From Auanema rhodensis (lineage: Eukaryota; Animalia; Nematoda), in contig OZ059898.1 of NCBI GenBank assembly GCA_964057225.1, positions 8,804,001 to 8,868,000 of the forward strand: a stretch of 64,000 nucleotides of DNA, written 5' to 3'. Shown here in pieces: positions 22,885 through 64,000 of this stretch. Both the position numbers and the translations under genes were made by a program. How positions within the stretch are numbered: the stretch's first letter is position 1; every line of letters begins with the position of its first letter. A model generated the notes under the pieces. The model had not been told where the DNA came from and did not search any database. It saw nothing but the letters and a program-made list of their open reading frames with translations.

Positions 22885-23944
<1,060 letters not shown>

Positions 23945-33648: not shown

Positions 33649-36600
33649 ATGCAATTTTCTGCGGGTTTACTATTATTTTCCTTCCTATTTTTCTCCAGTT
33701 CTCTTGCCAAATCACCGTAAGTTCTTTTTTTTTCTATCAAAAGTATCCGTTTGAAATATATTCTTTAATCCAGTAATGCTATATCCAATTTCAGGGTTCC
33801 TTTTGTTGTACTTCCATCATTTTTCCGTTTAAATGCAACAAATTCCTTAACGATAACACCCGTTAAGGTTTTTTTTAAAAATATTAATGAAATGAAAAAA
33901 ATTGAAATTTAAGGAATCATCTTCTATTCAATTAGTTGATATTGATGTTCGAGTATATGAAAATATAAGAAATTCACGACAAAATGAAATATTTTCAGTA
34001 AAATTAAGAGCAAAAAAAGCAGGTAAAATCTATTTCATTTATATAATTAATAATAATTAATTATTATTTAGGAGCAGCACATACAGTTAAAATTGATATC
34101 AAACCATCAGTATCAGATACAGTTGATATATTAATATCTGTTGAAAGACATTCAAAGTTTGAAACAAAATTAATGGTGAAACCGGATTTATCAGCTATTC
34201 ATATTCATACTGATAAAGGAATATATAGAGCTGGAGAGAAAGGTTTAATCATATATTCCTTATCTCAAATATCTATTCCGTACTTCATGTTTTAGTTAAT
34301 CTTCGTGTGTTACCACTCACTTACTCTGGAACAATTTATCAAAATGCTATTGAAGTTGCACTTGTTAATCCAGATCGCTTTGAGTTAATTCGAAAAACAG
34401 TTGTAGCTACTGATAACTATGCTTCTTCTGATTTTGAATTACCTGATCATCTCTTTTACGGTGAATGGAGAGTTATAGCTCGTCCTATAGGAAGTAGGGA
34501 AAATGATTTATCATACGATACAACATTTACAGTTGGAGATTACGGTAAATTTCTTCTTCTTTACTATATGTTAATTCTGTGTATGTAAACAATAATATTT
34601 TTTATAGAATTACCACCATTTAAAATTTCTGTTGCAATAGAAGAAGGTGATCCACTTACCGCTTCACGCTTTACTATTGATGTCAAGTTCGTTTACTATT
34701 TCGAGTTTTTTTCCCAATTTCTTTACTATATATTAGAATTTTATAAATTTTTTAAGATATTTCCATGGGTCTCCAGTTAATGGTACTTTAGCCATATATT
34801 GTTCTCAATCAAACAAGAATAATCAAACTAATCCTGCGCCACAAACTACACCAATTAAACAATCACAAGTACGTTAATTTAATTATATTTCTATCAAAAA
34901 TATCAAATTTGAACAATTTTAATTTAAAAAAATTTATATATATATATATACATATCTATGAACAAATTTTAAATATTATTAATAAAAAGAAAACATTGAG
35001 ATCTACATTTATACTTATCTTCTTGACTTTCGACGTTCAAATCCATATAGAATCGGGTTTAAAACAGAATTAACCACTATCAGATCTTCTAAAAAGTTCC
35101 CACCATAGTCTGATAACGAGTTAAAAGCTGTTTCATCAATAAATCTAAAAAAAATAAAAATCAATATTAATTTAATATAAATAAATAATAATAATAAATA
35201 AATCAAATCCCTCTAATAGATCAGGTTTGAATTATTTCTTTTGATTTAACACTGATGACTAAATACAGAATGTAGTTTGAAATATTTTTCTAATCCACAA
35301 AGCCCATTAAGCCGATAGCTTCGTACGGGGCTTTACCTTAAGATTGGTATCAAACTAATAATTTTAATTTGGACTGTTCTGTTAAAACTAAAGACTTTCA
35401 TGTATTCTAAACCACTTGATGTAAAGTTTTCATATAATCTATTATATAATGAACTCTCTACTTTGAGCTCTGATTCATTCATTGCTCAAAACATTTTTTC
35501 TTTAGATTTTCGCACAAATCTTATAATTAGAAAAAAAAAAACTTCATACATGTATGTATATGTAAATAATTAAAAATATACATAACTAGACTATTTATTA
35601 TATTAGATAGAAGGGTTGTGTATATGAAATGTTGTTTTCATTTGAATATTGGTTTGACGTGATTTTCACGTAAATTTCATATTCCTATTTCTCATTTTCA
35701 CATATGGGTGTAGTCATTGAACGGTTGCGATTTATTATCTCATACATATATATATATATGAAATTCATATACATATATATATGTATATATTATTTTCTTA
35801 GAAATATGGTTTTTTTATTTTATAAAAATGAATATAGAATAGTATTCATTAACTATATATATATTTTTTTTTATTATGGTTAAATAGTGAGAAACAACAA
35901 CTAACCTTAATGTAGCTAACGCATTATATGGTAACCAAAGTGCTATATGAGCTGCAATAACAGCCATTGCACTTCGAAATACTCGTGATCGTAATTGGCG
36001 ACGCCATGTAGGTAAACTACGACATCGATGAAGTCCTATAAAGAAGCCATTATCACTGTTACGTCATTTAAGAAAAAAAAAAGTTCGTATGTAGGATAAA
36101 CTAGGTTTAGAGATTAAAACATTTAATCCATCTATAGATAAATTAAAATATTTGAAGTATTTTCAGCTTTTTTTTTCGCAAATTAAGATTATACGTAATT
36201 ATTGAATGTATGTAGTTTAATATATTAGAGTTTAGTTTCATATTAGAATTATCTATATGAATATTTAATCATTTTGAGTACAGTATACCAGTTGAATATT
36301 TTTTTTTTTGTCTTCTATACTCAAATATTTTATTTAAATGCATTTACACATAGATTTTCATATCTATATAATATATAAAAAAAGAAATTCTTTATATTTT
36401 ATTTCTTTTATGTTATCAGAAAAAAAAGAATATCCAATGTCTTTGTAGGATATTTTGTTCTAAATCTTATGAGATCATTTAACTATGTGATTTGATGAAA
36501 GTCAGCATAGTTTATTTTAACTTTATTGTTACTATTCTAAATATAATTAGGAAACCTAACAATGTTTGGTAACAAAAAAAAATTTCTTTTTTTTTTTGTG

Positions 36601-39044
36601 GGCGTTGAATATCAACAAAGCGTAACATCATGCATACATATACTATGTATATATCTCTTTATATATATAACTATATGCATATAGTTAGTTATATATATAT
36701 ATGTATAAGTTAACTAATATATATACATAGTTAACAGAATGTCATTAACTTTTATATAATCATATTCGGAATGATATTTTATATTTCAAAAATGAAAAAA
36801 AGCAATCAGGTAATAAGAATAAGAAGTGAAATTAAAGTCAATTTTATTATATTTTACTATAAGTTGCTTTTGAATTATCCATATGTATACATGTGTATGC
36901 GTGATAATTTTAAAGAAAAAAATTACTTTACATACCTTGTCCATGAGTTGGATTAGATTTCTTATAATCCGAATATTCTGCTGATGATGCAACAATAGAC
37001 TGAAATGCTGACCATTTATTCTTTTTTTTTAATTTTCCTGAAGGTGATAACATCACGTCCTGTGATGATGAATTTTCGGTTCTATAAAATAAGAAAATGA
37101 ATGATATTTCGAAAAATTTAAAGAAGCAACTTACCGATGTTCATAATCATTACTTCGAATAACACGAACAGCTTCTTTTGTTCGAATTGTATAATGAATA
37201 AGTTTAAATATAATTAACATATAACATATAGCTATAATGAAGACCGGTAACCAGAAGACATTGGCTTGATGAAATGCTTCATATGTCATTGCTAATGTTT
37301 CATGATCAACACCAAAATATACAGATTCATTGCTGTTATCATACTGCAAATTTGTATTTTATTAAGTTATAGTAATATTTTGAATTTTATATTTTACGAT
37401 GTTTCACAAAAACTCTTTTGTATTTGATTGAATCATCAAGCACAAGCATGCATCTCGTTGAAATTCAATTTTGATAATATTCTAATAATTCTTGGAAGGG
37501 AACACACGGAAGAAAATTTCGTTTTCAAATTCACAACCTAATTTGCTTTTAAAAGAGAAAAGGAAAAATTTTCAAAACTTCCATTTTAAATTTTGTAAAA
37601 CGAACTTTAACGGACATCAAGATACTAAATGTTCTTATTATTTGCAAATGTTTCTTCTTTAAAAAGTCAACATGCAAACATTTTCAAGAATTAAAGATCG
37701 TTCATATAAATTTCAACTGACCGACAGAATGTTAACACATTGATGCCAGTCATCTCTTATTTCTACGCTTCTCCATAATATTGCTTGAGGAATGCTACAC
37801 AACGCAGCTAATGTCCATGCTGTACAAAGCATCAGACGTACTCTTCGCACGGAAGTAGCTCCTGCAAAACCAAACTTTCTCATTAGTTTCTATTCTATTT
37901 CACATGAGAAGATGCTCCAAGATCAAACTACGTTTGCTTTTTTTCATTTCAACTCTCATCATATATTCTTCATTGAAATTCAAAGGAAGTAAATTGTTCA
38001 AAATAAGCTTTACCTTGCAAATGTCTTGTATAGACAACTTTAAGACGATCTAATGCTATGGCAACTATGATATTAGAATGAGCGTAAAAACCAAATACAG
38101 AGAAGAATTGATACAAACGACATCCTATATCCCCGAGTCTCCATCTATAGGTGATTAACCATACAATCTATATACTATATAATTATTCATTAATATATAA
38201 TAAAAATACCTTTCCTAAAGAATAAAAACATAAAATAAAGAAATCACTTATACATAAATTCAATTTGAATAATGTAAAAGAATTTAACTGATATGGTCCA
38301 GTAGAAAAACTTGTACGAACTGTTGGTTGTCTGAAAATAAGGTGATTTCATTTCTTATTCTTTTCTTTTTCTACTTTCGACTTATGTCTATAAAAATAGT
38401 ATTTGAGTGGAATATTTATAAACCAAAAAAGGAAAACGTTTTAGACATTTTTGGATCAATCCATCAGCGTTGAAGCATACTCGGAAAAATAAAAAATTGT
38501 TTACAGCAGTAAAAAACTATTGACCTCACAACTGATTTTTTAAAGTTTTCATTCAAGCTTTAATTAATATAAATATATTTCTCTTTGAAATTTTTCTATT
38601 TTTTTATGTTTTTAATGTAAAACATTTAATATTATGGAAACTTCTACTATAAGTTTATATAAAAATAAACAAAAACCAAACAAACCTTGAACTTGTAAGA
38701 ATTTGAGTTAATAATATAACATTCAAAACAACAGCAACTGCTGTCATAATAGATAGAAATACAACTTCAAAATCATCTACATTTCGACGTGTAGGTATGA
38801 ACTCTGAATTCATCGACGAAATATCCAGCTCGTCCGATTGTGTCAGAACTTTCGTCTGTCGAATGTTCTGTGTGAGAAATTGTTTTCAAATGTCACAATT
38901 ATTTTTCCTGAAAACGCAAATCAGCAAACTCAGAGATTGTAATTCTGATCGAAACGAAAAAATAACTTAAAATTGAATAAGATAATACATAATGAAAGAA
39001 ATATAAAAAGAAGTCGGAAAGTAATGCTTTTGCTGATCATAAGT

Positions 39045-39105
<61 letters not shown>

Positions 39106-40892
39106 AAGAGAGAGAAGGGGGGGGGGTTGGAAGAATACCATAAAGAGAGAAGAAGACAAGAGTAGAAGATAGATGAAGCCAGAAGCGAATATGGAGTGAA
39201 TAAATTAGTTAGTACATCATATAAAGAACCTATCAAGACAAATAACGAAATAGAAAAGAACGTTATTGTCTAAGCATTAAAATAAAAAATCATAAAATAA
39301 TGAGAGAAATATAAGTATTTAAAAGAAAAAAAAGAAAGAAAAGTATTATATTTCATGGTTTAAATTAATTTTAAACATTTTACATTTATTTAATGAACTG
39401 ATCAAATTAGATTATTTCTCACACAATTTTACTCTGAATTAACTCTATTTCCTCACCTCCTCACTCTTAACCAACCTCTCTTGTTCACTTCTCTCACTCT
39501 CCATTCATACATTCGTTCACCATTTTATCCCTCATCTGCTTTTTCAAACAAAAATGAGTTATTTTCTGTTACCCTCCTAAATACCAAACAGAGAGTCAAT
39601 TTCATCTATTACTTATAAGATTACAAAGACTTTTTTAAATGAATTTTCATAGTGGGTAGTAGTTTAATGAATACAAATAAAAGATTAATATAAATAAATA
39701 TATATATTCATTGAATATTGAATGAAAACTTTAGAAAAAACTTGTATATACATGTATATACAGTTATTTTAGATGTTAAATGGAGATTAAAATTAAATAA
39801 AATGAAATAAAAACATCAAGTTGTAGACTATAATAAGTAGAGTAAGTTCAGCATTTTTTTCTCCTACTGCTATGTCTTCAAAAACAAATATTTTAATCAA
39901 AAAAACATGGATATTCAACCGAATTGATAAGTCAATGCAACTTGAAATAACAAATCGCTCACGCTATTCACGTGAATTACTTCAAGCTTGAATCGCTAGG
40001 ATGAAAAAAAAACTAAAATTCCTGCGTAAGTGAAAGTGCGTGGAATTTGAAACTGAAGAATAAAATCAATTTGAATTCTTCTTTTTTTTTCTGTCAATGA
40101 TGCTTCTAATAGAAGTATTTGAAAGTTTAATGTTGAGCTAGAAATCAGTTAACTATATGCATAAGGGGCTAGAGGAAGTAACAGGCTTTTACTTTAAGAA
40201 TTTGAAAGGCTAAGTATATGAAAATCATAGATATATTTGAATGAGATGGGCGGAGACTAACGCATAAGCTTCCGGAAAAGCTTAAAGATTACCTTCTAGA
40301 CTACAGCAACATGTACATTTAACTTTGAAAACTAAATTTTCTTACAAAAGTTTAATTCCAAATATTGAAAGTAATTTGGTCTTTACAATGAATATAAGCA
40401 CGTGGTGCTAGGGTTCAACTAGGACTAAGCCAACAATTTGTTTTGAATATCAAATAATAAAAGTGAATATAAAAGTATAATTTATATAATTGGTTTAAAG
40501 TTTATAATGAAATAATTATATACATGAATACGTATATATATATTGACTATTTTTTTATTATAAACAATTAATTGATGCTTATTATTAGAGAATTCTATTG
40601 AACATCCTCACAAACTATTTCTTTTTTCTTTTTTTTTTAATATTTAAACTTTCACTAAACATATATTTATATTCATATAATTAACTATATATGAATATAA
40701 ATATATTGATATTAATTATTATTAATAAATTTACAAATATTTTTGTTGGCTTATCAAAATATTTCTGATCGTAATTCCCCCTATGTAATTTCATTTTGTT
40801 TTTTTAAACAAAATCTGAAAACTACAACCCTGTTTAACAGATATTCATGATCCTACTGATATTCTTAGCCTATGACTCTTTATTGCCAGAAT

Positions 40893-40974
<82 letters not shown>

Positions 40975-43900
40975 TTATATATATATATATTTATCTCTCC
41001 TACCCTTTCTATCTTTTTCTTTCTTTCTCTATATTTTAATCCAATACACCACGATCTCATACGAATTAAACGAAAACTAACTGAAAAGACAATATAGTGA
41101 CGAATGGACTTACGTATAAGCTATACATATATGTATATGTATGCTTTCAGTGCATGTACATATTAGCATTTGAAATGAATAAAACAATTCAAAAACAATT
41201 AGTTAACGATTAAATTATATAATAAATATAAATTAATATATTTCTTTAATTATTTTGAAAAAAATATAAATATAAGTTTTTTTATATATATATATATATA
41301 TATTATATATTAATTATACATACATATAGATATATATATTTTATAGAATTTAAACTATGAACTTTTCATAAAGTTTGATGTTTTCTTCATGTTTCAATGA
41401 CCTAATGTTTATTTCAAATATATTATAATAATATATAATATATGAGAAAAAAGTCAGAAACATAAATATCAAAACTGACAGAAAGACAATGTTCTTTGCA
41501 TTATCAAGACATCTACATGATAATTTGCTTTCCGATAAAATGGCTTAACTAACATTCACCTCTTTGTCAAAACATTAACAATCAATTAATTTAGTGAGGA
41601 ATATACTTAATTTGTCCTTTTTTTTGCAACTTTTTAAACAAAAAATCTGCAAGAAAACAAAATTTGGAATATGAAGTTTATGAAGCATGTAGTTCCAATA
41701 TTGTATTTTTTTAATAGATTGGTGATGCTTTGCACGAAACTTTTTGAACTTTCAACAATGAATAGAAAAAAGAATAATTTTTCTTTGCAATGATTCAGTT
41801 TTGTTTCCTTTTCGTTTTCTTTTTTTCCTGTTTCTTTTGAAAAAATTAAGAGTTGTGGTGTGAATCTTCATTTACATCTGGCATCATTTAATTGGTTCGC
41901 AGAAATTCTTCCTGATCTCATGTCAAAAAAGAAGATTTCCCTCAATTTTAAATATATTTAATTTGAATTTGAATAAAATATAAAAAATAATTTCAATGAC
42001 TAAAAATTATTTTAAAAAAAGTAAAAAGAAAGAGGAGAAAATTGAACTACATATTGAACTAAACTATATAGAAATTAGATGTTCTTATAGAACTTCAAAC
42101 AGTGTATTTCATTATATTATATTAAATATTGATAATGCGTCAGCTAGTAAAAGATGAAAAGAGACGAAAAGAAAAAGAAAACTAAAAGCCATTTACCAGA
42201 AAAAAAAATATGAAAATGAAACATCAGAATGGTGAGAAAGAAAGATGAAAATATAGACAAAAGGCTTCAAAGTTGGGAAGTTTCAATGACGTCTTATATT
42301 CAGAAGATTTTTTTAATTCTGATCTGGATGATTTAATAAAATTAAATTTGATGGAATAAAACCGTTTGTCCGAAAAATCAAAGCAGGAATTAGAAAGAGG
42401 ATTTGGAGATATCATTTGAAAACGTAGGATTATACTAGAAAAACACATCGTTTGTTGCTTGAAAAACGGATTTAATATGACCAACTCATATTACAATATA
42501 CATATATTTGTGCTTTTTTTCCAACTTTAGATAAGAATTGTAACATTTTTCGGAAGGGGAAAACGTTGAAATGATGAAGTTTCATTGTAATATTTCGCTA
42601 ATTTCAATGTTTTTTGGATTGGATATTATGATTTAACAGTACAACAATCTGTTTAAACGTATATAAACTTTTGTCATTTTGCCAACTAAAACGAAATATA
42701 AGTTCAACTAATAACTCTTTTATAAAATATTTGAATAAAAATTAAAAATTAAGCTTTATTTCATGTTTAAACTTTGATAATAGTTTTAGCATTTGAAATA
42801 GAAAATGAGATAGAAAAAGAGAAAAATATATAAATTATATGAATATAAGAATAATATAACTTATTTCATACTTCTTACTACTAATATTATACATATAATA
42901 TACATACATATGAGAATATAGAAGAAGAAGTTTCCAAACATTCACTCAAAGATATTTTTCCGTTTTTTGACGAATATTTAGAAATTTTATTACTTGAATA
43001 ATAGAAAAAATACGAACGAATTTGCTTAGTTTATCAAAATTTGTCTTTGTGAATAAGGAAAAAAGTTTTTTAATCTTCAGAAAAGAGAATTGTGTTGTAA
43101 GTGTAGTTCTAGGTTTTTCATAATAACTATTATAATTTAATAAAAAAACTAAAAAAAAAAATATATATATATAGAATAATATATTATATATAAAATAAAT
43201 ACATATGTATACATATACTATATGATATAATTAAATAAAGGAAGATTTTTGGAAAATCTTGTTTCCCAGTATATAGATGTATTTTCTATATATTTTGAAT
43301 ATATCTATTGTATTAGAATATATATAAAATATTTTAGAAATATTTAATAATATATAAGAATTCTTAGAAGTTTTTTTATTGTTAAAATCATTCATTTATC
43401 CGATTTATAACTATAATCTTATCCGAATTAATATTTTAACAAATTCATGTGATATTTAAAGTGATTCATGATCCATAATTTGACTTGGGGGGGGGGAATT
43501 AGATTTTGAGCTACTTTTGCTTTAATTTCATCACTATCATCTGACTTTTTCTTTGTCGTCATCATCAGCATATGTATGTATATCCGTGTTATAATACTTT
43601 ATCTTTTTTTTTTTACTTTATTTTGTTATATACATATGAGGTTTAGGTTTATATAAGGTTTATAAACATTGAAGAATACGAGAAAGGTTGGAACATTTTC
43701 CCAAAACCACGAAAAACATGTTAAACTTTGAAACGAAACTCATATCATACGGATAATTCACTTTTGAATGTTTTTTTGAATTGCTTACTCATTCATTTTT
43801 CTGAGCTTTTAGCCCATCTCCTTCTTAATCTTAGTAAAAAAATATTCTCTCAATAAACAATAGGATAAATAGAAAAATATTTTTTTGTTGTAGTAAGATT

Positions 43901-52607: not shown

Positions 52608-52652
<45 letters not shown>

Positions 52653-53991
52653 TTCTCTCCATCCCTCTCCCTCTCCCTCTCTTCCTCTATCTTGTTCTTT
52701 TAGTTTTAGCTTTCTTCTGTCTTTTATAACCTCTTTCTCTCTTTAAACTTTTCTTCTCTTCTCTTTGATCATCCTTGCCCTCTTCTTTTGCCTCCGTGAA
52801 CAAATTGTTTTCAATTCTGATCACGCGTTGTCGACATGAAGATGAAGTAATTTTGATGGCATAAGTATGGTGATAATAGAAATACATAAGACAATAATAG
52901 AATGAAAAGAAATAAGAGACTTAGTTATACTGTAAACTTATTTGCAAATTTAATTCTAATTAAACTTGCCTGTACTTGTATACCAAATAATTTTATGGAG
53001 AGATGATAGATTAAATGTAGTAACTGAAAATTACAAACAACTTTAACAAAAAAAGAAACAGTAGTAGAACTTTTATGTTTTCATTTTAAATTATCAAGAA
53101 ATTCTGTCTGATATCATGAAGTACTAGAATTTCGAGAATAGTTTTTGTTTTCTCTTAAAATTGATGATTTGCATGAGACTATGAGAGAAATAGAAAAATC
53201 TTTTTTTTTCTAGAAACAAACCATGTTTACACATATTCCCATATCATTGTACACACATGCATTCATGTATAATTTGAAAACAAAACAGATCTTTTATTCT
53301 GATCAATACTAACTATTTGGTAATCAGGATAATTCATATATAACCTACGAGAAATATATATGTAATTCTTGATGAAATAATATTACTTTAGTATTTTTAA
53401 GAAGAAAAACAAGAAAAAAAAGAAATTTCTTTCTTTTTGAACTAATTCCTGGATTTGTCAATGAAATACAACGGAAAGCTATGTGAGAAGGATGATATTG
53501 ATACTTTCTTCAAATTGAGGAAGATAAAACTAGTTTTGAGTTAAGCGATAATAAGTCTTCTCGAAGTAGTTCTGTGATATTTCACGTCTCTCATGTCTAA
53601 ACGTCATTCACGTCATTCACGTCTTTCACGTCTTACATGTCAAATACAATTATCATTGTTAACTATGCAAACGCTTGAAGCTATTCTTTTCATCTGCTTA
53701 AAATATTTTTAAAAATTTGTCTCCAAACTTTAAGAAGATGAGTTATACATAGACATGTAAGAGAATTTACAAAAATTTACAGGTAAACAAGGCCATATAT
53801 ATGAAATTTGAAAATGAAATGAAAAGAAATAATATTAAAGTTAAAAAGAACAGTAGTTCTTTATAGAAAATATTCTTTCAATAAAAAGAAAAAAAATTTT
53901 TCTTTCAAATAACTGATCATATATATATACATATATGTATGTATATATAGATGTATGTATATATTATATGATATAATATATATGAATAAGA

Positions 53992-54046
<55 letters not shown>

Positions 54047-57000
54047 CATATCATATAATATATACATACATATATACAAAGATGTTGATATGATTTATAA
54101 GTTAACATAAGTTGTTTCAGATAAACTTTTTTCAATATTATCACAAGATAGTTGTTTATAAATACTAGAATTATATATAAGTTGTTATAAATAGTTAATT
54201 CTTTTAAAATTAAAACAAAATAAAAAACGAATACTCTTCAACGATTTCGAAAGAAAAATGATAGTAAGAACAACAACATTCGCATCAAACATCTTTTTCA
54301 AATTGATTTAATGGTCAATAATCCTTTTAAATTGATCCAACTTTTCTAAATTGTCAAATTTTCCTTGAAATCTCTTCATGTTCTTATTGAACTTTTCAAT
54401 TTTCATGATAATCACACACATATACATACATACACACACCCTCACTTTAGACTTTGATGCTGAACTAAGCAAATTACAGCCTTCGTTTTGACGAAAGCTT
54501 TCATACTCTCTCAGACGTTCTTTGTCTTGATTTTCATTTGAAATCCAATTTCAACCTTCAGCTTAAATCGTTATCTATAGTATTTTCAAACAAACTTTTC
54601 GTTTTCTTTTCAAATATACAAAATAACAAAAGATTTTGGTAATTGAATATTCAAAAAGCAGATAATTCAGATGAAGGGAACCCTTTTTGGAACAATAACT
54701 AGAAGTCAAAGGGAATGTCAAGTACTTTCTGAAACTATTTTCCATACATGTCCTCAACTATCTAATGATTTTAGAATAACGAAAAGCTTTTTTCTTTATT
54801 TTTCCCGTTTCATTTTCATTCTTTTTTCTTTTAAGACATTTTAGAGAGAACACATTGAAGCAGTTATTTTTACTTTTGCTTATACATAATTGAAAAAAAC
54901 TTGAACTATTGATTAATTTGAATCAAAAGCTTAGAAAATGTAATAATAGAAGAAAAAAGGATAAAAGTATACTTAAAAGCAGTAATTGGAAGAGGACATA
55001 CAATATTTTGTTTTCTTTAAGGGCATATAATTGGGTCTAATCTTATAAGAAATTAAATTTTTTAGAAACAAAATTTGAATAAGTAAAATGAATAACTAAA
55101 TATAATTATATGTATGTATATATGTTGAGGAAGTGGGTTCAAATATATGAATTATTCTTCATAACATTTCACTATTTATACATATATTTTACTTATTTTT
55201 CAAATATACTATATTTTTTTCCCTTTTCAATGAAATAAATGCATAAATGTATAATGCAGTTGATAAAATCGTGGACTATAACTCAATTTATAGAACCTCT
55301 CTCAAGCATTATTATTTATCAATTTTATTGTATTATGAAAGAATATAGTATATGAAGAACTTTCAATCAGACTTGTCTGCAATTTTATATTCTTCTAATT
55401 GAGTTTAATGAAATTAATATAGATTCTGCAGATGACACTTAATCAGTTTGAGCCCATATTTCCTATTTTTTAATATTATAATTGGATTCTAAAATGTCTA
55501 AATAATATTGTAATAATATAAACGATTGTGCTAAGGGAGTACTAATTTCAATAAAATTTATATATATTGTCTTATAGGCTTCAATTTTTTTTGGCATCTA
55601 AGGCTTACTCGAACAATATTTTCGTTAGCATTCAAATTTTTAAATGTGAATTGTGAAGTATGTATTAGAGGATAAGTAAAAAAAGAAAAAAAGACAAAGA
55701 GAAATACATATGTTTGAAAGAGGAAGAGAAATCTTTGAAGAATTGTTAGAGAACAAGCTGACAATCCAGGCATATATTCAACAGTTCTTTGAGATTGTAA
55801 AACCTTTTATAAAGACGAAAAGTACAAATGACAAGCAGAGATAAAGATAAATAAATTCAAGAAGTATTCATGAACATGCATACATGAAATCCCACACATG
55901 TGTGCGCAAAATTGGCAACATCTGAATTATTTAAAGAGTTATTTAAGAAATAGAATGAATAGACTGCAAAAGATATGGAAGAAATCATGAAAGGTATGAG
56001 AGAATAATGAGCACAATAGAATAGATATATACTTGTGTAGATTTGTAAGAAAAAAAGATCAAAGGGTGGGAAGAAAAGGGCGAACCATTCGAATTCTAAA
56101 AAAAACAATTTTTCATCAGTATCTTAGCCCTCTAAAAAGGCCAATAACGTCACAAGAGGTGATGATTGATGACAGCTCGAGGGGGCATACCAAAAATTAC
56201 ATGCTTGAAGGTTTTTTCGCTGCAAACTATGCAAGTAAATCTCTAATACTTATAGTTTGAAGGGCACAAGTGCGTATTCGACGAATTTGAGAGATCCGGT
56301 GTCATGTACAACGAAATCTATTTGCATTATATTTTGCGATAGCACTAATAAACATCTTTGAAAAAAGATATTCCTATATGTAGATTTTACTTTTCCTCAT
56401 CGTCATTTAATTATTTGCAAAAGAAATTCTTTCATCTTTTCGCAGCTTTGAAGAAATGAAAGATCTTTCTTTCAAAATAAAACAAGGTCGAAATATTTTC
56501 AAATATTCAAAAGTACAAAAAAGGTCAATAAGATGGAGGATTTATAGCATATTATTGTGTAGAAAAAATAATATACAGTTGTTATAGTATTAAATACTAA
56601 AGATTGCTTAAGTTATTTGTTGTCATAACACCTTACCCCCAAACTGTGCTATCAGATTTCGCATATATACATACGAATTCCAATGAAAACAATGAAAATA
56701 TTTTTCAATATCGAAATTTTAAACCAGTTAAAACCTTGTAGAAAATAGGTATTTTTCAGATAAAATGGCATTAATCAAGGAGAGCTAGTTAGTCAACATG
56801 AACCAAAAATAATCAAAAAATGTGAAATTTTGGTTTAAATAACATTTAATAAATGAAAAGAAATGAATAAGTATATATGTATATACAAGTAGAAAATGTA
56901 TTCAATACTATTACTAGATATTTATAAATGAGAAACAGGAAAATAAAAAGATAATTTAATCAAAAAATATTTTAAAAACTGTACTCTGTATATACATATA

Positions 57001-60000
57001 ATGAAATTTATTGTTATATCAATTGGTAAAGTGAAGCTTAAAAGAAAGAAAAACAAGTTCAACTTATTCAATTGTCTATTACTATATTAACAGGAAAAGA
57101 AGGAGGAGAGAGAAGATGATAACGATATAAATTGAGTTATAACATGTTTGATGAAATCTTTATCTCAACACAAAGCTGAAAATCGAATTGCTTGTTCTTA
57201 TTATTGAAGATGTAAGCATTTGAGTAAAAAAAAGATTTATGAAATTAGTATGGATCCAAATAGTTTGTATCATATTTCTACTTCATCTATATATGACGTC
57301 ATACCAAATGCCCAATTAGAAATCATCTCTCGTTTGCCCATATTCTCCCTTGTTAACTTTTACATTCTCTCATTTTCTCTCTCATCCTTCATCTCTCTTG
57401 TTCTTCTTCTCTCTCATTCTTCTTCTCACGCTCTCTCTCTCTCTTTTCCCCTTACTTACTCACAACATTTTGGCTGCAAGCACATGAATGATGATTAATG
57501 ATCTCTCATATCCTCCCTTTTTTTTCTTTATATCAAAGTACTTTACTAATTTATATCATAATTAAATATTATAAAGGACTGCATATACATATTAAATTGT
57601 TTTTTTAAAAGAGAACATCGAAACGATAACTTCGTTTAACATTTAACATGATAACCCTCTTTTTGGAGAAAATAATACGTCACAAGAAAAATCGTTTTGT
57701 AAGGTAATATTCCAAAAAAAAAAGTTTAATTCAATTTAACAAAATGTGATTTTGCTATTATTGCAATAAAAAATATATATCTATATATCTATATAATATA
57801 TATATAAACATATAGTATATAGTATATTTAAATGATTTTTGGATGTTTATAGTCCTTAATTTAAGTTTTTAACAATATTCAAATTAATATTATTTCAATA
57901 TATGAAATTTTTTAAAAATTAAATGAAATATATAAATTCTTCTGGTAGATATAATAGAAAAAAGTTGAATAGGGATTTGAAAATATTTGATCAGCTGTAG
58001 AGCATTATACTCTTATATGATCTATGCATATATAGCAATTTGTTCTTTAAAAAAAAAGAACAAGTCAAATTTTCATTAAAAAAAGGATAATAAGAACTAG
58101 AAGTTAAGAGTAAGTTCATGATTTCAATGCAATAAAAATGAAAATTAAAGAATAAAAGCATTTTGAGAAAAGGCGGAAAAACCATTAGCTGAGCAGTCTA
58201 CGTATTAATGTTTATTCCGTAAATGCTTTTCATTGGTCCGGAAATCATATCATATGATCTAAAATTCTATAAATGATCTTTATCCGCTTATTCAAAATTA
58301 TAAAAATGTATACCTAGTGAAATTTGGCATAGCTAAGTATAGTATTGGCCCTCAAATCCTTTTCCTGAGTTTTTTTAAGGTGAAGACAAAATAGAAAACT
58401 AGCAAGAAAAGAAAAAGAATGAACGTTTTGTATAGAACTACTAGAATTATATAGAACCATATATTCATTTGTAAAGAACTGAACTTGACTCCATTCCTAA
58501 TAAGCAGTATTTAAGAATAATGTTGTTTTTTAAATTAGAAATGAGATTGACTACGTCTTGTACGACCGCCAATTTTATGATATTGAATTGAAATAACTAT
58601 TCAAATTTCCTGCAGTTCACGCATATTTATTCCCAATTTACCTACAAATCTGCATGGTCGGTCAATCTTCGAAAGAAAAAGGTGAATTTTGTTTGAAAAT
58701 ATGAAATAATAGGAGAAGGATTAGAAACTTTAAAGATTTTTTTAACGAAAATCTCATAATAAATTACCAATATATTTAGTTGATCCTGATACAGTATCTA
58801 ATCTCATTGTTGTAAAAGTCCCAATTCATAAATCAACTATAACAACATCTATTGTTGAACAAGAATTGTCCAAGTAGATATTTAACTTTAATTTATATAA
58901 TTTTAAAAAAAAACTATTGATTTAGAATAATTTCGGTTAAACATTGTCGAATATTGCACCAGAGGAAAAACAATACATTATTTTTAGTTCAAGCATTGGA
59001 TGAATCACATATTCATAAAATATTTTTAAAGACAACAAATGGTTCAAAGTTAATGATTAATAAAAGACAATGGGTTATTTCAAGATTTAAAACCAAAAAT
59101 GTTCGTTATGTTCTTTAAACTTTTCAATAGGCTTTTTTCTCTAGATAACTGAAGGTCCTAGCCCGTTAAGGTTAGATAAACGCCAACCTGCCGTGTCAGC
59201 GTCTGAACTTCAATCTATTTACGAGAATTATAAGAAAACGGTTGGTATACTAAACAAAATTTGCTTCCATATAATTGTTATGCATATATATAGGTTGAAA
59301 GTCAACCTACTTCATCAAAAAAGCTAAAAAATTCACGAGCTACTAAGGGAAGACATAAAAAATCAAAAGAACAACGAAAAGCCAACGTACATATTCTTCC
59401 AAAAAATGTTCTGGAAGAAGAGATAGCTGAAAAAGAAGAGATTGTAAACACAAATGCAGAAAATGAGAATTTGGCGGTGGAGAGCATTCAGGAAACGACT
59501 ACTATAGGGTCTCAGTTTCTTGAATTAGCTCCACCATATCACAATCTGCCAAATACTGCATACTTTCGGAATGCACATATAGTTCCGCCTCCAATTTGTT
59601 GTAATGATGGATTACCTACATTACAAAGAATTATAAATCGTTATTTATCCGGTATGAAGGTTGAAATTTAATTTCTTATATCAATTCAAATATAAAATAT
59701 TTTTATCTTCAAGGAACATGATGATAATCAAGAACGAAATTTACAAAAATGGCTTTGGGAAAAGAAAAATGAAATGTTTAATCAGCAAGTAGAAGAAAAT
59801 AGAATACTCTTCGACAACTTGAACCGATTTCAACAAAACTATGTAAATATGTCACCACATAAATCATTCAGTTGTTATCCAGGTAGTAACATAAAAAAAA
59901 TTTTTTTCTCTTGACGATATTCCATGAGATAATTATTCTTTTATAGAGTTTTGGACCCCCTGGAAATAATACAAGATTACTAATGAAAAAGAAAAATTTA

Positions 60001-63000
60001 ATTAAATATTATTGATTCATAAACTGTTTCATTTCATTTCAATTATCTTTTTTACTATTAAATAAAATTAATAAAAAAAAGGTCAAATACAAATAATATG
60101 AACAATTTTGAGATACTCGAATGAATAAACATTCTAATTTGTTGTTTTCAGATTGTTGATGGATATTGGAAACAAGCTGTTTCTCTTTCATCTTGCTTTA
60201 CAGATGACCAACGATTAGCAACCAAAGTTTTGGTGGAAATTCGTGATCAAGGCACAGGAGACCGTGGAGAAACTGAGTTTGAGTTTGATCCTCTGGCAAG
60301 CTCATTTGATTTAATTCCACTTCGTCCTTTCTATAATACAATGACTTCAGCACTTTCATTCATAGTATATCATAGAAAAATGAGGAAATTAAGCTTAAAA
60401 CTGGAAATTACAGACAATCCCATTAGGAGCTGTAAGACAACCTTCATTGGAAGTCACTGCCACATGTATAGGAGGCTTATACAGTGGAAATGTTACAATT
60501 ACCACTCAGATTGGGGAATTTTTCAAAATAGATAAGCCAAAAAGTTTTTCTTCGTGTTATGTTATCATGGTTCAGGTAAGAATTGATAGCAATTATAAAA
60601 TAATTTCCTATGATTCAGGCTGTGCGCTTGTTGGGAAATGATATTAAATCTCGATCAAAAACCGTGATGCTGCCGAAGATGGAACAGACTCCATCCATTA
60701 ATCCATCATGGATAGAAATTCAAAATCCGGAGGCTTCTTACAAAGTTGGAAGTAAATTAATGGTTCGAGTACCACAGAAATTAGCTGTACAAATGAATTA
60801 TTTGGTAAAATTTCTCAAATATGTATTATTAAGAAAAATTTTCAGATTCTATGTAATCATGTGGAAGTTGTAGCTGCTGGTAAGATACGTGATGATGCTG
60901 TTCTCACCGTTACTTTAACTTCAAATATGATCGGAAAATGTATATTATTCGTTTATATGACACAAACTAAAAACGTTGTTGATATGATACAATTTTACGT
61001 CTCTGAGGACTGTCAAGTAATAGAAATGTTTTTGAATTTCAGTAAATAATATATTTTTATTCAGGCAACTACATTTGCTTCAAAAGCTGAAATCAAACCA
61101 GGAAATAATGTTACTTTTACTTTAAACGGTGATCCATATGGTTTAGCAGTTATACGAAGCACAGATGATAGACTAAATGCTCTTTCATTAGTATGAGTTC
61201 TTATACTTCTACATCGATTTAAATTTCTTTTTTTAGAAAAGTGAATCAGTTAAAACGAAAAATTGGGATTTATCCATGTTCCAAGAATCAAGTTTGAAGA
61301 ATCATCAAGCTCGTCTTATGAACTTTGTCGATGTTAAAGAAATTCACAACTCTATAGGTTGGTCAAGAATATTTTCATATTATAATTTTTATTTAGAACG
61401 AAGCTGTGCTTCTGCTGGAACAGAGTATAGCGTTATGTTCGGGAAATGTCCGGAAGCGAAAGTTACTCCATCTATTGTCTCAAACTACTGTTTGAAAAAA
61501 ATGATTGACGCCTGTCTTAATCCAAAAAAACCAACCAGTCAGTCTATATTTTATTTTGATATCATACCGGATCAAATATAGCTTCAGCTTCTTGTCGCAA
61601 AAAAGGGGGTTGCAACACAAGGATAGCCAGTTCCAAAGAAGTTGTTGTGTTAGAAGCAAATGTTTTTGCTCCAAGAGTCAAACCGAAATTCCTTCTGTCT
61701 CGACCATCCGCTGCCGAGGAACTCTTTAGGTTTTATAACTGTTGTCTCTGCTATATGAAAATAGAATGCTTCAGTGATCCAACATTACCAATATTTGATG
61801 AACCTGACGATGACGGGCCACCAATTCGCCAACATTTCCATGAAGTCTGGCTGTTCAATGCCGTAAAATTAGGGTGTAGTATCAATGAAAGGCTGTATTA
61901 ATGATTTCTGTTCAGTGCCTCAGGTACAGTATCCACTTCTGTGGCAGCTCCTGACTCCATTGGAAGATGGTCAGTTGCGACAGCATTTTGGTCCCCTGGT
62001 CAGCTTGACCTGTGCCGTCCGAGTAACATTGAAATCGTAGCGAAAAAGAATTATTTTATGGAAGTTGATATGCCACGACACGTTTACATAAACGAAACTG
62101 TTTCTGTGAAAATTTCAGTTTCAGCTTTAAAGCCACAACGCGAAACTAAGGTAATATTAGATTGTTCAATAAGTTAATTCCAGCTCAGTACGCATACAAA
62201 TATACACATATAAAGATATCATAAACAAGTAACAAAAAATGTTTTGAAAACGTACATATGTTACTAAATGTTGAGACATATTTCGCTTAAAACTTACTAG
62301 ACCATTTAATATTCTAAAGAATTGCTGAAAAATAATTTGTTTTCATTAGCTTTCCGTATGTATGGCTGATTTGTCAAGAAAAGTATGTGCTGATTTGGGA
62401 GCATTTGGTAGATATGGGGAACCTGTATACTCTAGGTATATACTCAATTAAATAAAATTCATCTTAAATAAATGTTTAGAGTGATTGTATCTCCTAGCAA
62501 AATGACTGATAGTAAAACTTTCACAATGAGATTCTTAGTTACTGGTCCTACAACAGTTCTTTTCCATTTGAGAGAGTATGTTTTCCTGGTTTGAGAGTTA
62601 TTTTCATGAAGAACCTTTAAGAGAAACATCATTTCCTGGAAAGCATCATTGTGATATTGGTCAAATTTATGATTCAGTGAAACTCGATATAAATATCGCT
62701 GTAAGTATAATAATAATATGTGAATAATATAAATAATATTATTTATAGAAAAGAGCGGAAACAGAGGAACATTATAAGAGATTAATATTGAATGCTGACA
62801 AACCTTTGAGTAATGTCGTGCTACTCAATGATGACCCAGATGATGTCAAACGATTTAAAGACTTATTCCGAACTATGCCTCATGCATATCCAGGATTTTC
62901 AACAAATAAAGAAATAATAGGTATATTAGTTAAATATTAATTATAAAAATAATAAATTTATAACTTCAAGAAGTATTTGAACATCGTTCATCAGATGACG

Positions 63001-64000
63001 CTAATGCTGTTGTTACCGAGATTCATACAAATATTTTGGATACTGATGCTGTTTATAGTTTCACAGTCGATATATCCAGTATAATTAATTACAGGAATAA
63101 CTCTCAGAAAAATTATATTTCATTTTAGAATTTCTACCAAACACTATCATCTCTGACTCACTCAATCGAGTTAAAAGAGGAGTTCTAGACTATGGTAACG
63201 CATTCTTAACGGATATTATCAGAAAATTGTCAACTGAGTTATATCAATTTAAAAGACTTCGGACTCAAGGAAGTATTGATATAAGACAAATACAGACATC
63301 AGAAAACAAAATTGGATCATGTATGATTACCCTAAACATTATAATATATATTTCCATATATTATAGTGATATCTGATATGCTTCGATTTTCTGATTGTGG
63401 TCTCAATCAAACTTCTTGTGGTTTCTCAGAATTTGGACGTCCAAAAGATGAATCAAGCCGTTCTCCAATGTATATATTACAGTTTTCTGATTTGATGAGC
63501 AATAATTATTTTACAGATTATCATCATTAGCTGCTTCTCTATTTTGTGAAGCTTCTGCTGATGAAAAATTGGCTTGTGGAACTATTAAATACATTCAGAA
63601 TTTTATCATAAATGGTCTAAAAACTAGCGATGTAGATATATCGGATATGATTGATATTGTAAATCATTAAGTTCAAATTAATTAAACAAATTTAAAATTA
63701 TTACAGGATAGTCCAGTAGATCGTCAATGGCTTTTAAATGCTTTGTTCTTACAAGTTTCCAAAGATTGTGCTGCTTTACAATGCATTGTATGTCCATAAT
63801 ATTCTTAAAGTTTGAATTATTTTTATTTTCAGAAAAACGATTTAGCATGGTCTAAGCTCTATTTCAATTTTTATGATCTGGATGAAACTTGGAGGTGTTG
63901 ATTCGACATATTTGTACTGAACTAATTATATGATACTTAGATTTGATGATCGAACATTGGCCGCCTTAGCCTTTATGGGAACAAATTCGACAGCTGAAAT
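33649..64000 (+). CDS. thioester-protein (alpha-2-macroglobulin/complement) family member, complement C3/C5-like, lacking the thioester; 3' end beyond the window
   Basis: 5' exon block 33649-34868: signal peptide, MG1 SPVPFVVLPSFFRL, MG2 IHIHTDKGIYRAGEKV...FELPDHLFYGEWRV...FTVGDYELPPFKISV, MG3 KYFHGSPVNG. A phase-0 intron (34869-60151) follows. 3' block 60152->64000: MG3-MG6, IRQHFHEVWLF, APDSIGRW...YFMEVDMPRHVYINETV, and a TED-like region GFSEFG..SPILSSLA..LACGTIKYI. Confidence 0.88.
35015..38813 (-). CDS. GnRH/AKH-receptor-like neuropeptide GPCR (gnrr family), nested antisense in the TEP intron
   Basis: Eight exons: MNSEFIPTRRNVDDFEVVFLSIMTAVAVVLN; TM2 FKLNLCISDF; VWLITYRWRLGDIGCRLYQF; SNIIVAIALDRL; AWTLAALCSIPQ; WHQC; VFWLP; WRRQLRSRVFR; ALWLPYN; NSVLNPILYGFERRKSRR*. 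Confidence 0.9.
39049..39116. repeat. (GA)n microsatellite
   Basis: Long, nearly perfect GA dinucleotide tract upstream of the GPCR that starts at 38813. Confidence 0.9.
40896..40972. repeat. (CT)n microsatellite
   Basis: About 38 perfect CT units. Confidence 0.92.
45302..47532 (-). CDS. second GnRH/AKH-receptor-like neuropeptide GPCR (gnrr family), tandem paralogue nested antisense in the TEP intron
   Basis: Eleven exons: MDMEPNSTT..YIEMAALFFIILIGLPSN; LKINLNISD; LVWLYTYRWAFGSIACRLYQY; SSNIVVCIAVDRL; AWVMGALCALPQ; WYQCTDVW; VFWGP; WRKQMRNKIFR; LFWFPYN; LINPFLYGFVK*. Confidence 0.92.
52180..52368 (-). CDS. candidate 62-aa microprotein with an N-terminal hydrophobic segment and a composite LxVP/PxIxIT-like calcineurin-docking motif
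   Basis: ATG-initiated ORF MQVSTFMLLHYYAFIIFVVFFLRNAIGTKYLSVPQIIVEDPTSKGMAMNLLYSIMKPLMKLL* in a locally GC-richer island, with AATAAA overlapping the stop. Other frames are also open, so coding status is unproven. Confidence 0.35.
   Translation of the reverse strand: MQVSTFMLLHYYAFIIFVVFFLRNAIGTKYLSVPQIIVEDPTSKGMAMNLLYSIMKPLMKLL
52613..52648. repeat. (CT)n microsatellite in a polypyrimidine tract
   Basis: Perfect CT run flanked by CT-rich sequence. Confidence 0.85.
53581..53643. repeat. seven imperfect 9-bp tandem units (consensus TCACGTCWT) containing CRE/UPRE-like cores
   Basis: ttcacgtct ctcatgtct aaacgtcat tcacgtcat tcacgtctt tcacgtctt acatgtcaa. Confidence 0.7.
53993..54039. repeat. 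(TA)n microsatellite
   Basis: About 23 perfect TA units. Confidence 0.9.
58541..59969 (+). CDS. orphan gene nested on the same strand in the TEP intron; degenerate RRM-like N-terminal fold, basic (NLS-like) and acidic low-complexity regions
   Basis: Seven to eight exons join in frame: ...VDPDTVSNLIVVKVPIHKSTITTSIVEQELSK|IISVKHCRILHQRKNNTLFLVQALDESHIHKIFLKTTNGSKLMINKRQWVISRFKTKN|ITEGPSPLRL..|VESQPTSSKKLKNSRATKGRHKKSKEQRK..|EHDDNQERNLQKWLWEKK..|EFWTPWK*. AATAAA at 60061. The start is either 58541 or 58654. Confidence 0.75.

Follow-up and report, generated by a model that had tools for sequence, protein, structure and literature searches.

The window, a 64,000-nt stretch of Auanema rhodensis DNA, carries on its forward strand a complement C3-like gene with one very large intron (Table 1). 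A model built from the sequence comprises 28 exons with GT-AG boundaries throughout, runs from the ATG at 33649 to the window end, and translates into 1214 residues without a stop. The gene leaves the window at position 64000, in the middle of the TED; an earlier, sequence-only reading of this DNA had described a complete MG1-MG7/CUB/TED architecture, and the domains through MG7 are indeed present, followed by CUB and by a TED-like domain that has no thioester, but the second half of CUB (CUB2) and the rest of TED, as well as MG8 and the C-terminal tail, fall beyond the window end. The encoded protein is predicted to be secreted and to comprise about 1,690 residues.

Table 1. Features of the C3-like gene and of the genes nested within it (window positions)
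Feature	Position	Strand	Remarks
Exons 1-7	33649..34868	+	Start codon, signal peptide, MG1, MG2, first part of MG3; residues 1-287
Ends of exons 1-7	33716, 33867, 34022, 34242, 34544, 34686, 34868	+	Stop-free GT-AG model
Intron 7	34869..60151	+	25,283 nt; contains three other genes
Rhodopsin-type GPCR gene	35018..38885	-	Pfam 7tm_1 on four pieces, E 1e-6 to 0.02
Second rhodopsin-type GPCR gene	45452..47637	-	Pfam 7tm_1 on two pieces
Small nested transcript	58926..59668	+	Own contigs, pieces 58926-59100 and 59293-59656; not joined to the C3-like mRNA
Exons 8-28	60152..64000	+	Rest of MG3, MG4-MG6, linker, MG7, first half of CUB, approximately first 60% of TED-like domain; residues 288-1214
VSEDC	60999..61016	+	MG6 cysteine, equivalent of C3 Cys559, by alignment
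Linker between MG6 halves	61397..61873	+	Position of LNK and anaphylatoxin in C3, of bait in A2M
A2M domain exon (MG6 second half)	61916..62150	+	Pfam PF00207; contains DLC cysteine, equivalent of C3 Cys816
MG7 exon with KVCAD	62350..62435	+	Cysteine equivalent to C3 Cys873, anchor-bonded in C3
DYGNAFLTD	63188..63214	+	Start of TED-like domain; place of thioester loop, without Cys-Gly-Glu-Gln

The C3-like gene is intact, spliced, and transcribed. In transcript contigs of 5.2 to 5.3 kb, obtained from four runs of one study, at least 15 of the 20 introns within exons 8 to 28 were seen as GT..AG skips, the intron at 60365-60413 is bracketed by contig pieces 60152-60364 and 60414-60573, and the transcript extends about 1.5 kb beyond the window end. 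Each contig also has about 943 nt located 5' of 60152, and the loose end before 60152 is formed, in each of the four runs, by the final 30 nt of exon 7; the introns other than intron 7 measure 39 to 199 nt each. Five of the six peptides cited in the sequence-only reading lie on the forward strand where it had placed them, and the sixth, IKQSQIVDG, arises only after the splice from 34868 to 60152, which the transcript contigs contain. In tblastn searches, residues 87-266 of an orthologue (P0012) mapped to exons 1 to 7, where Pfam MG2 was weakly matched on exons 4 and 5, and exons 8 to 28 were likewise matched by orthologues. The protein is 51% identical to an Auanema orthologue; a full-length A. 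rhodensis protein for this gene was not found in protein searches. The small nested transcript had no Pfam match and corresponds to the N terminus of a fused Auanema gene model (P0001) that joins an upstream small gene to the C3-like exons; this fusion was rejected for A. rhodensis because the contigs hold the small transcript and the C3-like transcript apart.

The C. elegans orthologue of the gene is F13D2.1 (UniProt K8ESF0 / K8F7Z5); the counterpart in that species suggested in the sequence-only reading is real, and both gnrr-6 and gnrr-7 lie within it. F13D2.1 belongs to the same family, has the same anchor motif, and in its corresponding intron houses the same two gnrr GPCR genes, yet the two proteins are only about 30 to 45% identical in the alignable pieces. 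The family is present in at least three major nematode lineages (rhabditids/strongylids; tylenchids and panagrolaimids; spirurids/ascarids) and is annotated only as "A2M domain-containing." Full-length orthologues carry Pfam MG2, MG3, A2M_BRD, A2M, and TED; in the elegans group, the divergence is so great that the precomputed Pfam assignment of the proteins is empty or nearly so; we found no mention of F13D2.1 in the texts of papers, supplements aside. When the window exons were searched singly against Pfam, A2M (PF00207) was matched at 61905-62174 (E 3e-9; 8.8e-9 in a second search), along with weak MG2 and A2M_BRD matches, the remainder being too divergent. With its MG domains, A2M domain, CUB, and alpha-helical TED, the protein is a member of the TEP superfamily. 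Profile searches of the PDB matched C5, CD109, A2ML1, A2M, and C3 with E values of 1e-18 to 1e-21, and the scores for the core (C5, 78 bits; CD109, 76; A2ML1, 72; C3, 69) do not discriminate between the branches; in a structure search with a 1157-residue model, C5 and C3 came first (E 5e-33).

GCGEQ is absent from the window protein, where the corresponding position reads DYGNAFLT as the earlier reading had said, and GC[GA]EQ is absent from all of about 40 family sequences. In an alignment of 41 sequences (14 from the family, 9 C3/C4/C5, 8 CD109/iTEP, 9 A2M, and a bacterial A2M), the approximately 24 columns that hold GCGEQNM are a gap throughout the family. The missing thioester does not exclude membership in the C3/C4/C5 group, since C5 is also without one. 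The linker between the MG6 halves, which some family members have in a very short form, shows four conserved cysteines in the family alignment and then a stretch of variable length and sequence; in an orthologue model it forms two helices and then about 60 residues with pLDDT below 50. Neither the window protein nor its relatives had, in the alignment, an RxxR or any other basic site within the linker, so that a beta-alpha site is missing. The four-cysteine pattern differs from the six-cysteine CC..C..C..CC of anaphylatoxin, and ANATO (PF01821) had no match in six family proteins. A remnant of the anaphylatoxin was considered, as one family cysteine lines up with the first CC of the anaphylatoxin in C3; this is too thin to claim.

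Cysteines outside the linker follow the C3 pattern. The VSEDC column is a cysteine in 14/14 family members and 9/9 C3/C4/C5 proteins and never in the 8 CD109/iTEP, the 9 A2M, or the bacterial A2M sequences; the DLC cysteine column of MG6 is common only to the family and C3/C4/C5, and the KVCAD column of MG7 holds cysteine in all 14 family and all 9 C3/C4/C5 sequences and in no other group. Taken together, the three columns are occupied in 13 to 14 of 14 family members, 9/9 C3/C4/C5, and 0/18 other TEPs, the equivalence being one of alignment only (the label Cys559 for the C3 MG6 cysteine follows UniProt numbering). The matches to C3 drawn in the sequence-only reading were right for the MG6 pair and the MG7 cysteine, shared among the 41 sequences with C3/C4/C5 only; KCP/QCP, VSEDC/VKDSC, DLC/GIC, KVCAD/AFCSL, and the TED cysteine align, but SCASAG..VMF does not align with C3 GCTPGSG..AGVF.

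As the window ends within TED, the tail is known from the orthologues and from the transcript overrun of approximately 1.5 kb. Past TED, the orthologues have MG8, then an anchor motif of the C3 type, and a netrin-like C345C domain. Pfam found no NTR or A2M_recep domain in the family proteins searched, and no ANATO; the tail was therefore assessed by structure and custom profiles. The anchor motif, C-x4-5-C-x-CAE-xx-C, was present in 24 of 52 proteins scanned, a fish C3 (P0040) among them, and occurs in those orthologues, C. elegans F13D2.1 included, with gene models that extend far enough, as well as in further orthologues; it lies between MG8 and C345C and aligns column for column, with the same spacing, with C3/C4/C5. 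An AF2 model of an orthologue from MG8 to the C terminus had a pLDDT of 79.7, and its best 50 Foldseek matches were all CVF, C3, C4, or C5 (approximately 330 columns, E 1e-12 to 1e-9). Tail residues 188-327 superimposed on mouse C3 C345C (6xzu_B) with a Z score of 11.5 and an rmsd of 3.1 over 127 aligned residues. Among the best 50 matches of a wide structure search, the tail was paired with just one isolated NTR-type domain, C3 C345C, the other rows spanning the tail being C3c, C3, C5, and C4 chains. Reciprocal HMMs built from the family tail and the C3-group tail each matched nothing but the tail of the opposite group; an hhalign comparison between the tail and one fish C3 gave a weak match (probability 13%, E 0.002). 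With about 160 residues of NTR fold beyond MG8, the orthologues do not have an A2M/CD109/iTEP-type ending. Basic sites occur in the family at the CUB/MG8 boundary, as also in mammalian CD109, and just before the anchor.

A core tree of 41 sequences and 1345 columns, with the tail left out and C3/C4/C5 represented by vertebrates only (no invertebrate C3 and no nematode TEP-1), grouped the nematode family with C3/C4/C5 under LG+C20 PMSF (UFBoot 98, SH-aLRT 94), on a very long stem branch of about 2.8 changes per site. In AU tests on 24 taxa, run as fast constrained searches under LG+F+G4 and LG+C20+F+G4 with tail columns excluded, the best tree again placed the family with C3/C4/C5. The C-terminal domain, the phylogeny, and the cysteines were the grounds named with the sequence-only reading for refuting it, and each came out on the side of C3: an anchor and a C345C-fold tail in the orthologues, a place beside C3/C4/C5 without tail columns, and an MG6 pair and MG7 cysteine in common with C3/C4/C5 alone among the 41 sequences. 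The reading of the gene as a divergent, thioester-less C3 relative is thus supported.

We consider it probable that the gene, as the orthologue of F13D2.1, encodes a highly derived, predicted secreted member of the C3/C4/C5 branch that acts without covalent attachment. Furin-type enzymes might cut the protein where CUB meets MG8 and immediately ahead of the anchor, basic sites being conserved in both places, and C3-type MG6 and MG7-anchor disulfides might hold it together; it would work as a noncovalent scaffold, like C5 or cobra venom factor, in which cleavage within the disordered, fast-evolving linker could trigger the shape change usual in the family and the C345C domain could dock a partner. 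Immune, barrier, and signaling roles, as put forward in the sequence-only reading, are candidates, as is a neural/glial one. A bolder version, which we regard as unlikely, holds that nematodes, C. elegans included, never lost C3, and that F13D2.1 is a true C3/C5-clade gene encoding a thioester-independent, complement-like scaffold with partners, for example the factor-H homologue CFH-1, that are engaged by its C345C domain and its cleaved form. Nematodes are not known to have convertase, C6/C7, or factor B partners.

The placement itself has two competitors. The family could be an ancient, separate eukaryotic TEP branch older than the split of C3, A2M, and CD109, or its position could be an artifact of rooting or long-branch attraction, with the anchor, C345C, and cysteines being ancestral and lost in A2M and CD109. 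Joining the family to the bacterial outgroup was not rejected in the AU tests (p 0.061 under LG+F+G4 and 0.074 under LG+C20+F+G4), and the length of the stem and the nearly equal similarity of the core to C5, CD109, A2ML1, and C3 are in keeping with such an origin; however, it would need both gain and loss of the tail and two disulfides where a sister relationship to C3 needs one gain, a gene older than the cnidarian-bilaterian split would survive only in nematodes, and the C3 grouping at UFBoot 98 comes from the best tree under a site-heterogeneous model, so that we judge this explanation to be quite improbable. Lower still is the probability of a CD109/iTEP/A2M-type protein, like TEP-1 or Mcr, that lost its thioester and gained an NTR module by exon shuffling, making the likeness to C3 convergent. 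NTR modules are mobile, being present in netrins, sFRPs, PCOLCE, and TIMPs, and TEPs without a thioester are known, Mcr among them; the CD109 proteins of insects and myriapods finish with a Cys-rich signature, C-x-x-C..C-x3-C, in partial alignment with the anchor, and a CD109-like cluster at 0.97 was among the protein-language-model neighbors. Against these points, the AU tests on tail-free columns rejected grouping with CD109/iTEP (p 0.0003 and 0.0004) and with A2M (p 0.0008 and 0.0017), the CAE anchor motif is spaced as in C3/C4/C5, the MG7 cysteine and the MG6 pair are those of C3/C4/C5, and C345C of C3 was the tail's only isolated NTR-type match among the best 50.

A further alternative concerns function alone and is compatible with C3-clade identity: the protein could be a noncovalent protease trap, like the thioester-less ovostatin, in which the linker serves as bait and its cleavage closes a cage, C3 ancestry being irrelevant to its action. 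The linker does lie at the bait position of A2M, varies in length and sequence, and is predicted to be disordered, and Pfam A2M_BRD and A2M domains are present. Noncovalent trapping by A2M and ovostatin needs oligomerization, of which we saw no sign, and the conserved anchor and C345C tail would have no role in a trap; we hold this to be the least probable of the explanations considered.

The closest known counterparts of a derived C3/C4/C5-branch protein are C5 and cobra venom factor, in which MG1-MG8, CUB, TED, anchor, and C345C follow in the same order. C5, also thioester-less, was the best match in PDB sequence (E 2e-21) as well as in structure and has the MG6 cysteine pair and MG7 cysteine in common with the family; the nematode proteins differ from it in having no anaphylatoxin domain and no beta-alpha RxxR, in missing the thioester-loop columns, and in having additional cysteines in TED as well as the basic sites at CUB/MG8 and ahead of the anchor. 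The C3-like proteins of invertebrates (cnidarians, chelicerates, and molluscs), for which a basic site of alpha-gamma type has been described where CUB meets MG8 (PMC8960428), resemble the nematode family, which also has a basic site at that boundary, and have the same 13-domain plan, which the nematodes retain minus ANA, but they keep GCGEQ, ANATO, and the alpha-beta site, which the nematode proteins do not have. TEP-1, CD109, insect TEPs, and Mcr are secreted ecdysozoan proteins of MG/CUB/TED build, as the nematode family is predicted to be; their C terminus follows MG8 or consists of a GPI signal, without a netrin-type domain, whereas the nematode family has C345C. Drosophila Mcr has no thioester and works noncovalently. 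In C. elegans, TEP-1, which is without a netrin-type domain, has been treated as the worm's C3 relative (bioRxiv 10.1101/2025.10.23.684198).

According to Peng et al. (2022, PMC8960428), Nematoda is one of the phyla from which C3-like genes have been lost. If a C3/C4/C5-branch origin is correct, this loss would be extreme divergence instead of deletion: the proteins would have shed thioester, anaphylatoxin domain, and beta-alpha site, and the anchor, C345C, and C3-type disulfides would have persisted over hundreds of millions of years in nematodes both free-living and parasitic. The family would then amount to a natural experiment on the C3 scaffold without covalent tagging, with F13D2.1 as a genetically tractable orthologue in an animal that has a factor-H homologue, and it would comprise a conserved, predicted secreted, unstudied protein in hookworms, filariae, and plant parasites. 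Should nematodes never have lost C3, they would possess a cryptic, noncovalent complement-type module open to genetic dissection.

A large intron with nested genes is also found in the C. elegans orthologue, where the nested 7TM genes have been named gnrr-6 and gnrr-7 (PMC3527849), and in both species two antisense 7TM genes occupy the same intron of the C3-like gene. The first GPCR gene of A. rhodensis is the counterpart of the first 7TM gene inside F13D2.1 (gnrr-6 or gnrr-7): three of its five pieces (35018-35212, 37134-37358, and 37973-38167) match best at 8094-9753 of the C. elegans locus (L001), one (35818-36063) scores better on the other 7TM gene at 14800-14931 (E 2.4e-13 versus 7.8e-9), and one has no match on that locus. 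The second GPCR gene had its best tblastn matches at 14416-16759 of the same locus (up to 70% identity) and is the counterpart of the second nested 7TM gene. The nesting of gnrr-6/gnrr-7, preserved between distant rhabditids, is a striking case of conserved gene nesting.

Nematoda have been counted among the phyla that lost C3-like genes (Peng et al. 2022, PMC8960428), and a 2025 preprint (bioRxiv 10.1101/2025.10.23.684198) regards TEP-1, noted there to be without a netrin domain, as C3's relative in C. elegans. We propose that the C3-like gene of the window belongs to a nematode family that is probably a stripped-down variant of the C3 kind; since its genes are already in databases, this is a reinterpretation. 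The C. elegans orthologue in this family, F13D2.1 on chromosome X, was not named in any paper text searched.

As query of a full HMMER search, the A2M-domain exon retrieved only 38 proteins, none of them with a thioester (0/38). The family spans Auanema, Necator, Ancylostoma, Angiostrongylus, Trichostrongylus, Dictyocaulus, Diploscapter, Mesorhabditis, and Pristionchus; Steinernema (two paralogues), Panagrellus, Bursaphelenchus, and Globodera; Setaria and Anisakis; and many Caenorhabditis species. All members are named in databases as hypothetical or 'A2M domain-containing'. Their Pfam domains are MG2, MG3, A2M_BRD, A2M, and TED, with no match to NTR, ANATO, or A2M_recep in the proteins scanned. 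A direct scan of F13D2.1 gave only sub-threshold or borderline matches to MG2, MG3, A2M, and TED, and the precomputed Pfam column is empty for three orthologues from elegans-group Caenorhabditis (P0097, P0096, and P0098), owing to strong divergence; the gene may have been overlooked because elegans-group proteins largely escape Pfam. The two paralogues of Steinernema hermaphroditum (P0007/P0045 and P0027) have diverged, and in some isoforms of the former, use of alternative 3' exons leaves out the CAE anchor motif.

The gene model, assembled from stop-free segments and tblastn matches of relatives, comprises 28 exons with GT-AG introns throughout and encodes 1214 residues without a stop, beginning with a hydrophobic, signal-like N-terminus and cut by the window end in the middle of a TED-like domain; all peptides cited in the sequence-only reading lie on its strand. 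The intron between exons 7 and 8 measures 25,283 nt, and all others 39 to 199 nt. In four runs of one study, 56% of sampled words of 60100-64000 were present, which equals the expectation for exons alone. Twenty introns are predicted in 58001-64000, and at least 15 of them appear, among the skips listed, as GT..AG skips in contigs of 5.2 to 5.3 kb. Directly ahead of 60152, the loose end of the contigs matches the final 30 nt of exon 7 (four runs), so the 25-kb intron is truly spliced out. Each contig has ~943 nt upstream of 60152 and ~1.5 kb past the window end, extents that fit a protein of ~1,690 residues. As assembled contigs of one study, these data are evidence for presence and structure but not for the level of expression.

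Features of the window
Feature	Positions	Strand	Remark
7TM receptor-like gene	9373-12397	-	predicted from open frames
Short-chain dehydrogenase-like gene	21241-22698	+	open-frame pieces
Collagen-like open frame	22885-23754	-	GC-rich peak
Collagen-like open frame	26450-27148	+	GC-rich peak
C3-like gene, exons 1-7	33649-34868	+	gene model; starts with ATG
First nested rhodopsin-type GPCR gene	35018-38885	-	Pfam 7tm_1; inside 25-kb intron
Second nested rhodopsin-type GPCR gene	45452-47637	-	Pfam 7tm_1; inside 25-kb intron
(GA)n/(CT)n microsatellites	about 39040-39140, 40900-41000, 48100-48270, 52560-52700		25-kb intron
Small spliced transcript of its own	58926-59100, 59293-59656 (58926-59668)	+	just 5' of exon 8
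C3-like gene, exon 8	start 60152	+	gene model

In a tree of the core (1345 columns, everything after MG8 excluded, LG+C20 PMSF), the family and C3/C4/C5 were split from bacterial A2M, CD109/iTEP, and A2M with UFBoot 98 and SH-aLRT 94. AU tests on 24 taxa (P values under LG+F+G4 and LG+C20+F+G4, respectively) gave the grouping with C3/C4/C5 proposed in the sequence-only reading as the best tree (0.957 and 0.951) and rejected groupings with CD109/iTEP (0.0003 and 0.0004) and A2M (0.0008 and 0.0017); values were 0.02 and 0.026 for CD109 and A2M jointly, and 0.061 and 0.074 for the bacterial outgroup. By these results, the family is of neither A2M nor CD109/iTEP type. A sister relationship to C3/C4/C5 is favored, not proven, as it depends on the root; the family stem branch is very long, and the sample was without invertebrate C3 and nematode TEP-1. 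Plain profile similarity of the core did not tell the branches apart. With a predicted model of 1157 residues (pLDDT 73), C5 and C3 were the top structural matches (E 5e-33), the first match outside complement being A2ML1 at rank 44.

In a 41-sequence alignment, both MG6 positions (VSEDC and DLC) and the MG7 position (KVCAD) are Cys in 13 to 14 of 14 family members and in 9/9 C3/C4/C5, and in 0/8 CD109/iTEP and 0/9 A2M-type sequences, nor in the bacterial A2M. In C3, the two MG6 Cys bond to each other between the chains, and the MG7 Cys is bonded to the anchor. An anchor motif, C-x4-5-C-x-CAE-xx-C, follows MG8 in orthologues whose gene models extend there and also occurs in a fish C3; the nematode CAE motif aligns with the C3, C4, and C5 anchor, at which point A2M, CD109, and iTEP sequences stop.

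For an AF2 model from MG8 to the C-terminus (pLDDT 79.7, 14-sequence alignment), the best 50 Foldseek matches were all CVF, C3c, C3b, C5, or C4-gamma chains (E 1e-12 to 1e-9 over ~330 columns). When the model was searched independently of Foldseek, its MG8 part matched A2M RBD, TEP1r, and CD109 at Z 13-14, and model residues 188-327 matched the isolated mouse C3 C345C domain (6xzu_B) at Z 11.5 and rmsd 3.1, with 127/148 aligned; the best 50 structural matches included no other isolated NTR-type domain, the remaining tail-spanning matches being C3c, C3, C5, and C4 chains. Among about 120 TEPs, an HMM made from the anchor-plus-C345C tails of six vertebrate proteins found the nematode tails at the correct place (E 5e-7 to 1e-3), and a nematode tail HMM matched 9/9 C3/C4/C5 tails; neither matched A2M, CD109, or iTEP in that set. 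Scores in these comparisons were low (10-23 bits). Comparison of the tail with one fish C3 by hhalign was weak. The predicted structural match is the main support for the identity of the tail, and the anchor and C345C of the studied gene itself are predicted from its orthologues.

As the sequence-only reading had noted for the window protein, the thioester is missing: GCGEQ occurs nowhere in the family, and ~24 columns of the thioester-loop region are a gap throughout. Neither an anaphylatoxin domain nor a beta-alpha basic site was found in the family. Four Cys are conserved in the linker between the MG6 halves, which is predicted to form two helices followed by a disordered stretch of variable length. 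Basic sites (K-R-Q-R-x-R-R type) are conserved at the CUB/MG8 boundary, near the position of the C4 alpha-gamma site and in the same columns as the furin site of CD109, and further basic sites directly precede the anchor. We propose that the protein would be secreted and cut into chains by furin-type enzymes, with C3-type disulfides keeping the chains together, and that it might act without covalent attachment, by analogy with C5 or cobra venom factor; a cut in the exposed variable linker might trigger the conformational change, and C345C could serve as a docking site. Alternatively, the protein may be an ovostatin-like trap or, like Mcr or TEP-1, serve a structural, barrier, or glial function.

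Within the 25.5-kb F13D2.1 locus lie two antisense 7tm_1 genes, F13D2.2 (GNRR-6) and F13D2.3 (GNRR-7) (PMC3527849). The GPCR pieces in the window had their top matches mostly in the first and second nested C. elegans genes, respectively, the exception being piece 35818-36063 of the first gene, which scores better on the second C. elegans gene; gene order and host intron (after the MG3 exon) are identical. The two genes are thus gnrr-6/gnrr-7 counterparts, nested in the same way in distant rhabditids, and this arrangement bears out the suggestion of the sequence-only reading that a C. elegans counterpart may exist next to gnrr-6/gnrr-7. The small transcript had no Pfam match and nothing matching in the C. 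elegans locus; gene model CAI4233102.1 (P0001) of Auanema sp. JU1783 joins its counterpart to the C3-like gene, a fusion that is probably an error of annotation.

Microsatellites in the large intron translate as SLSLSL or RERERE. Elsewhere in the window, two Gly-Pro-rich open frames with G-x-y repeats, coinciding with two GC-rich peaks (37% GC versus about 25%), resemble genes for cuticle collagen. Other open-frame pieces, which combine a Rossmann-type start (G-x-x-x-G-x-G) with a Y-x-x-x-K stretch, look like a short-chain dehydrogenase gene, and a further 7TM receptor-like gene is suggested by W-L-P-F (TM6) and N-x-x-I-Y (TM7) in open frames.
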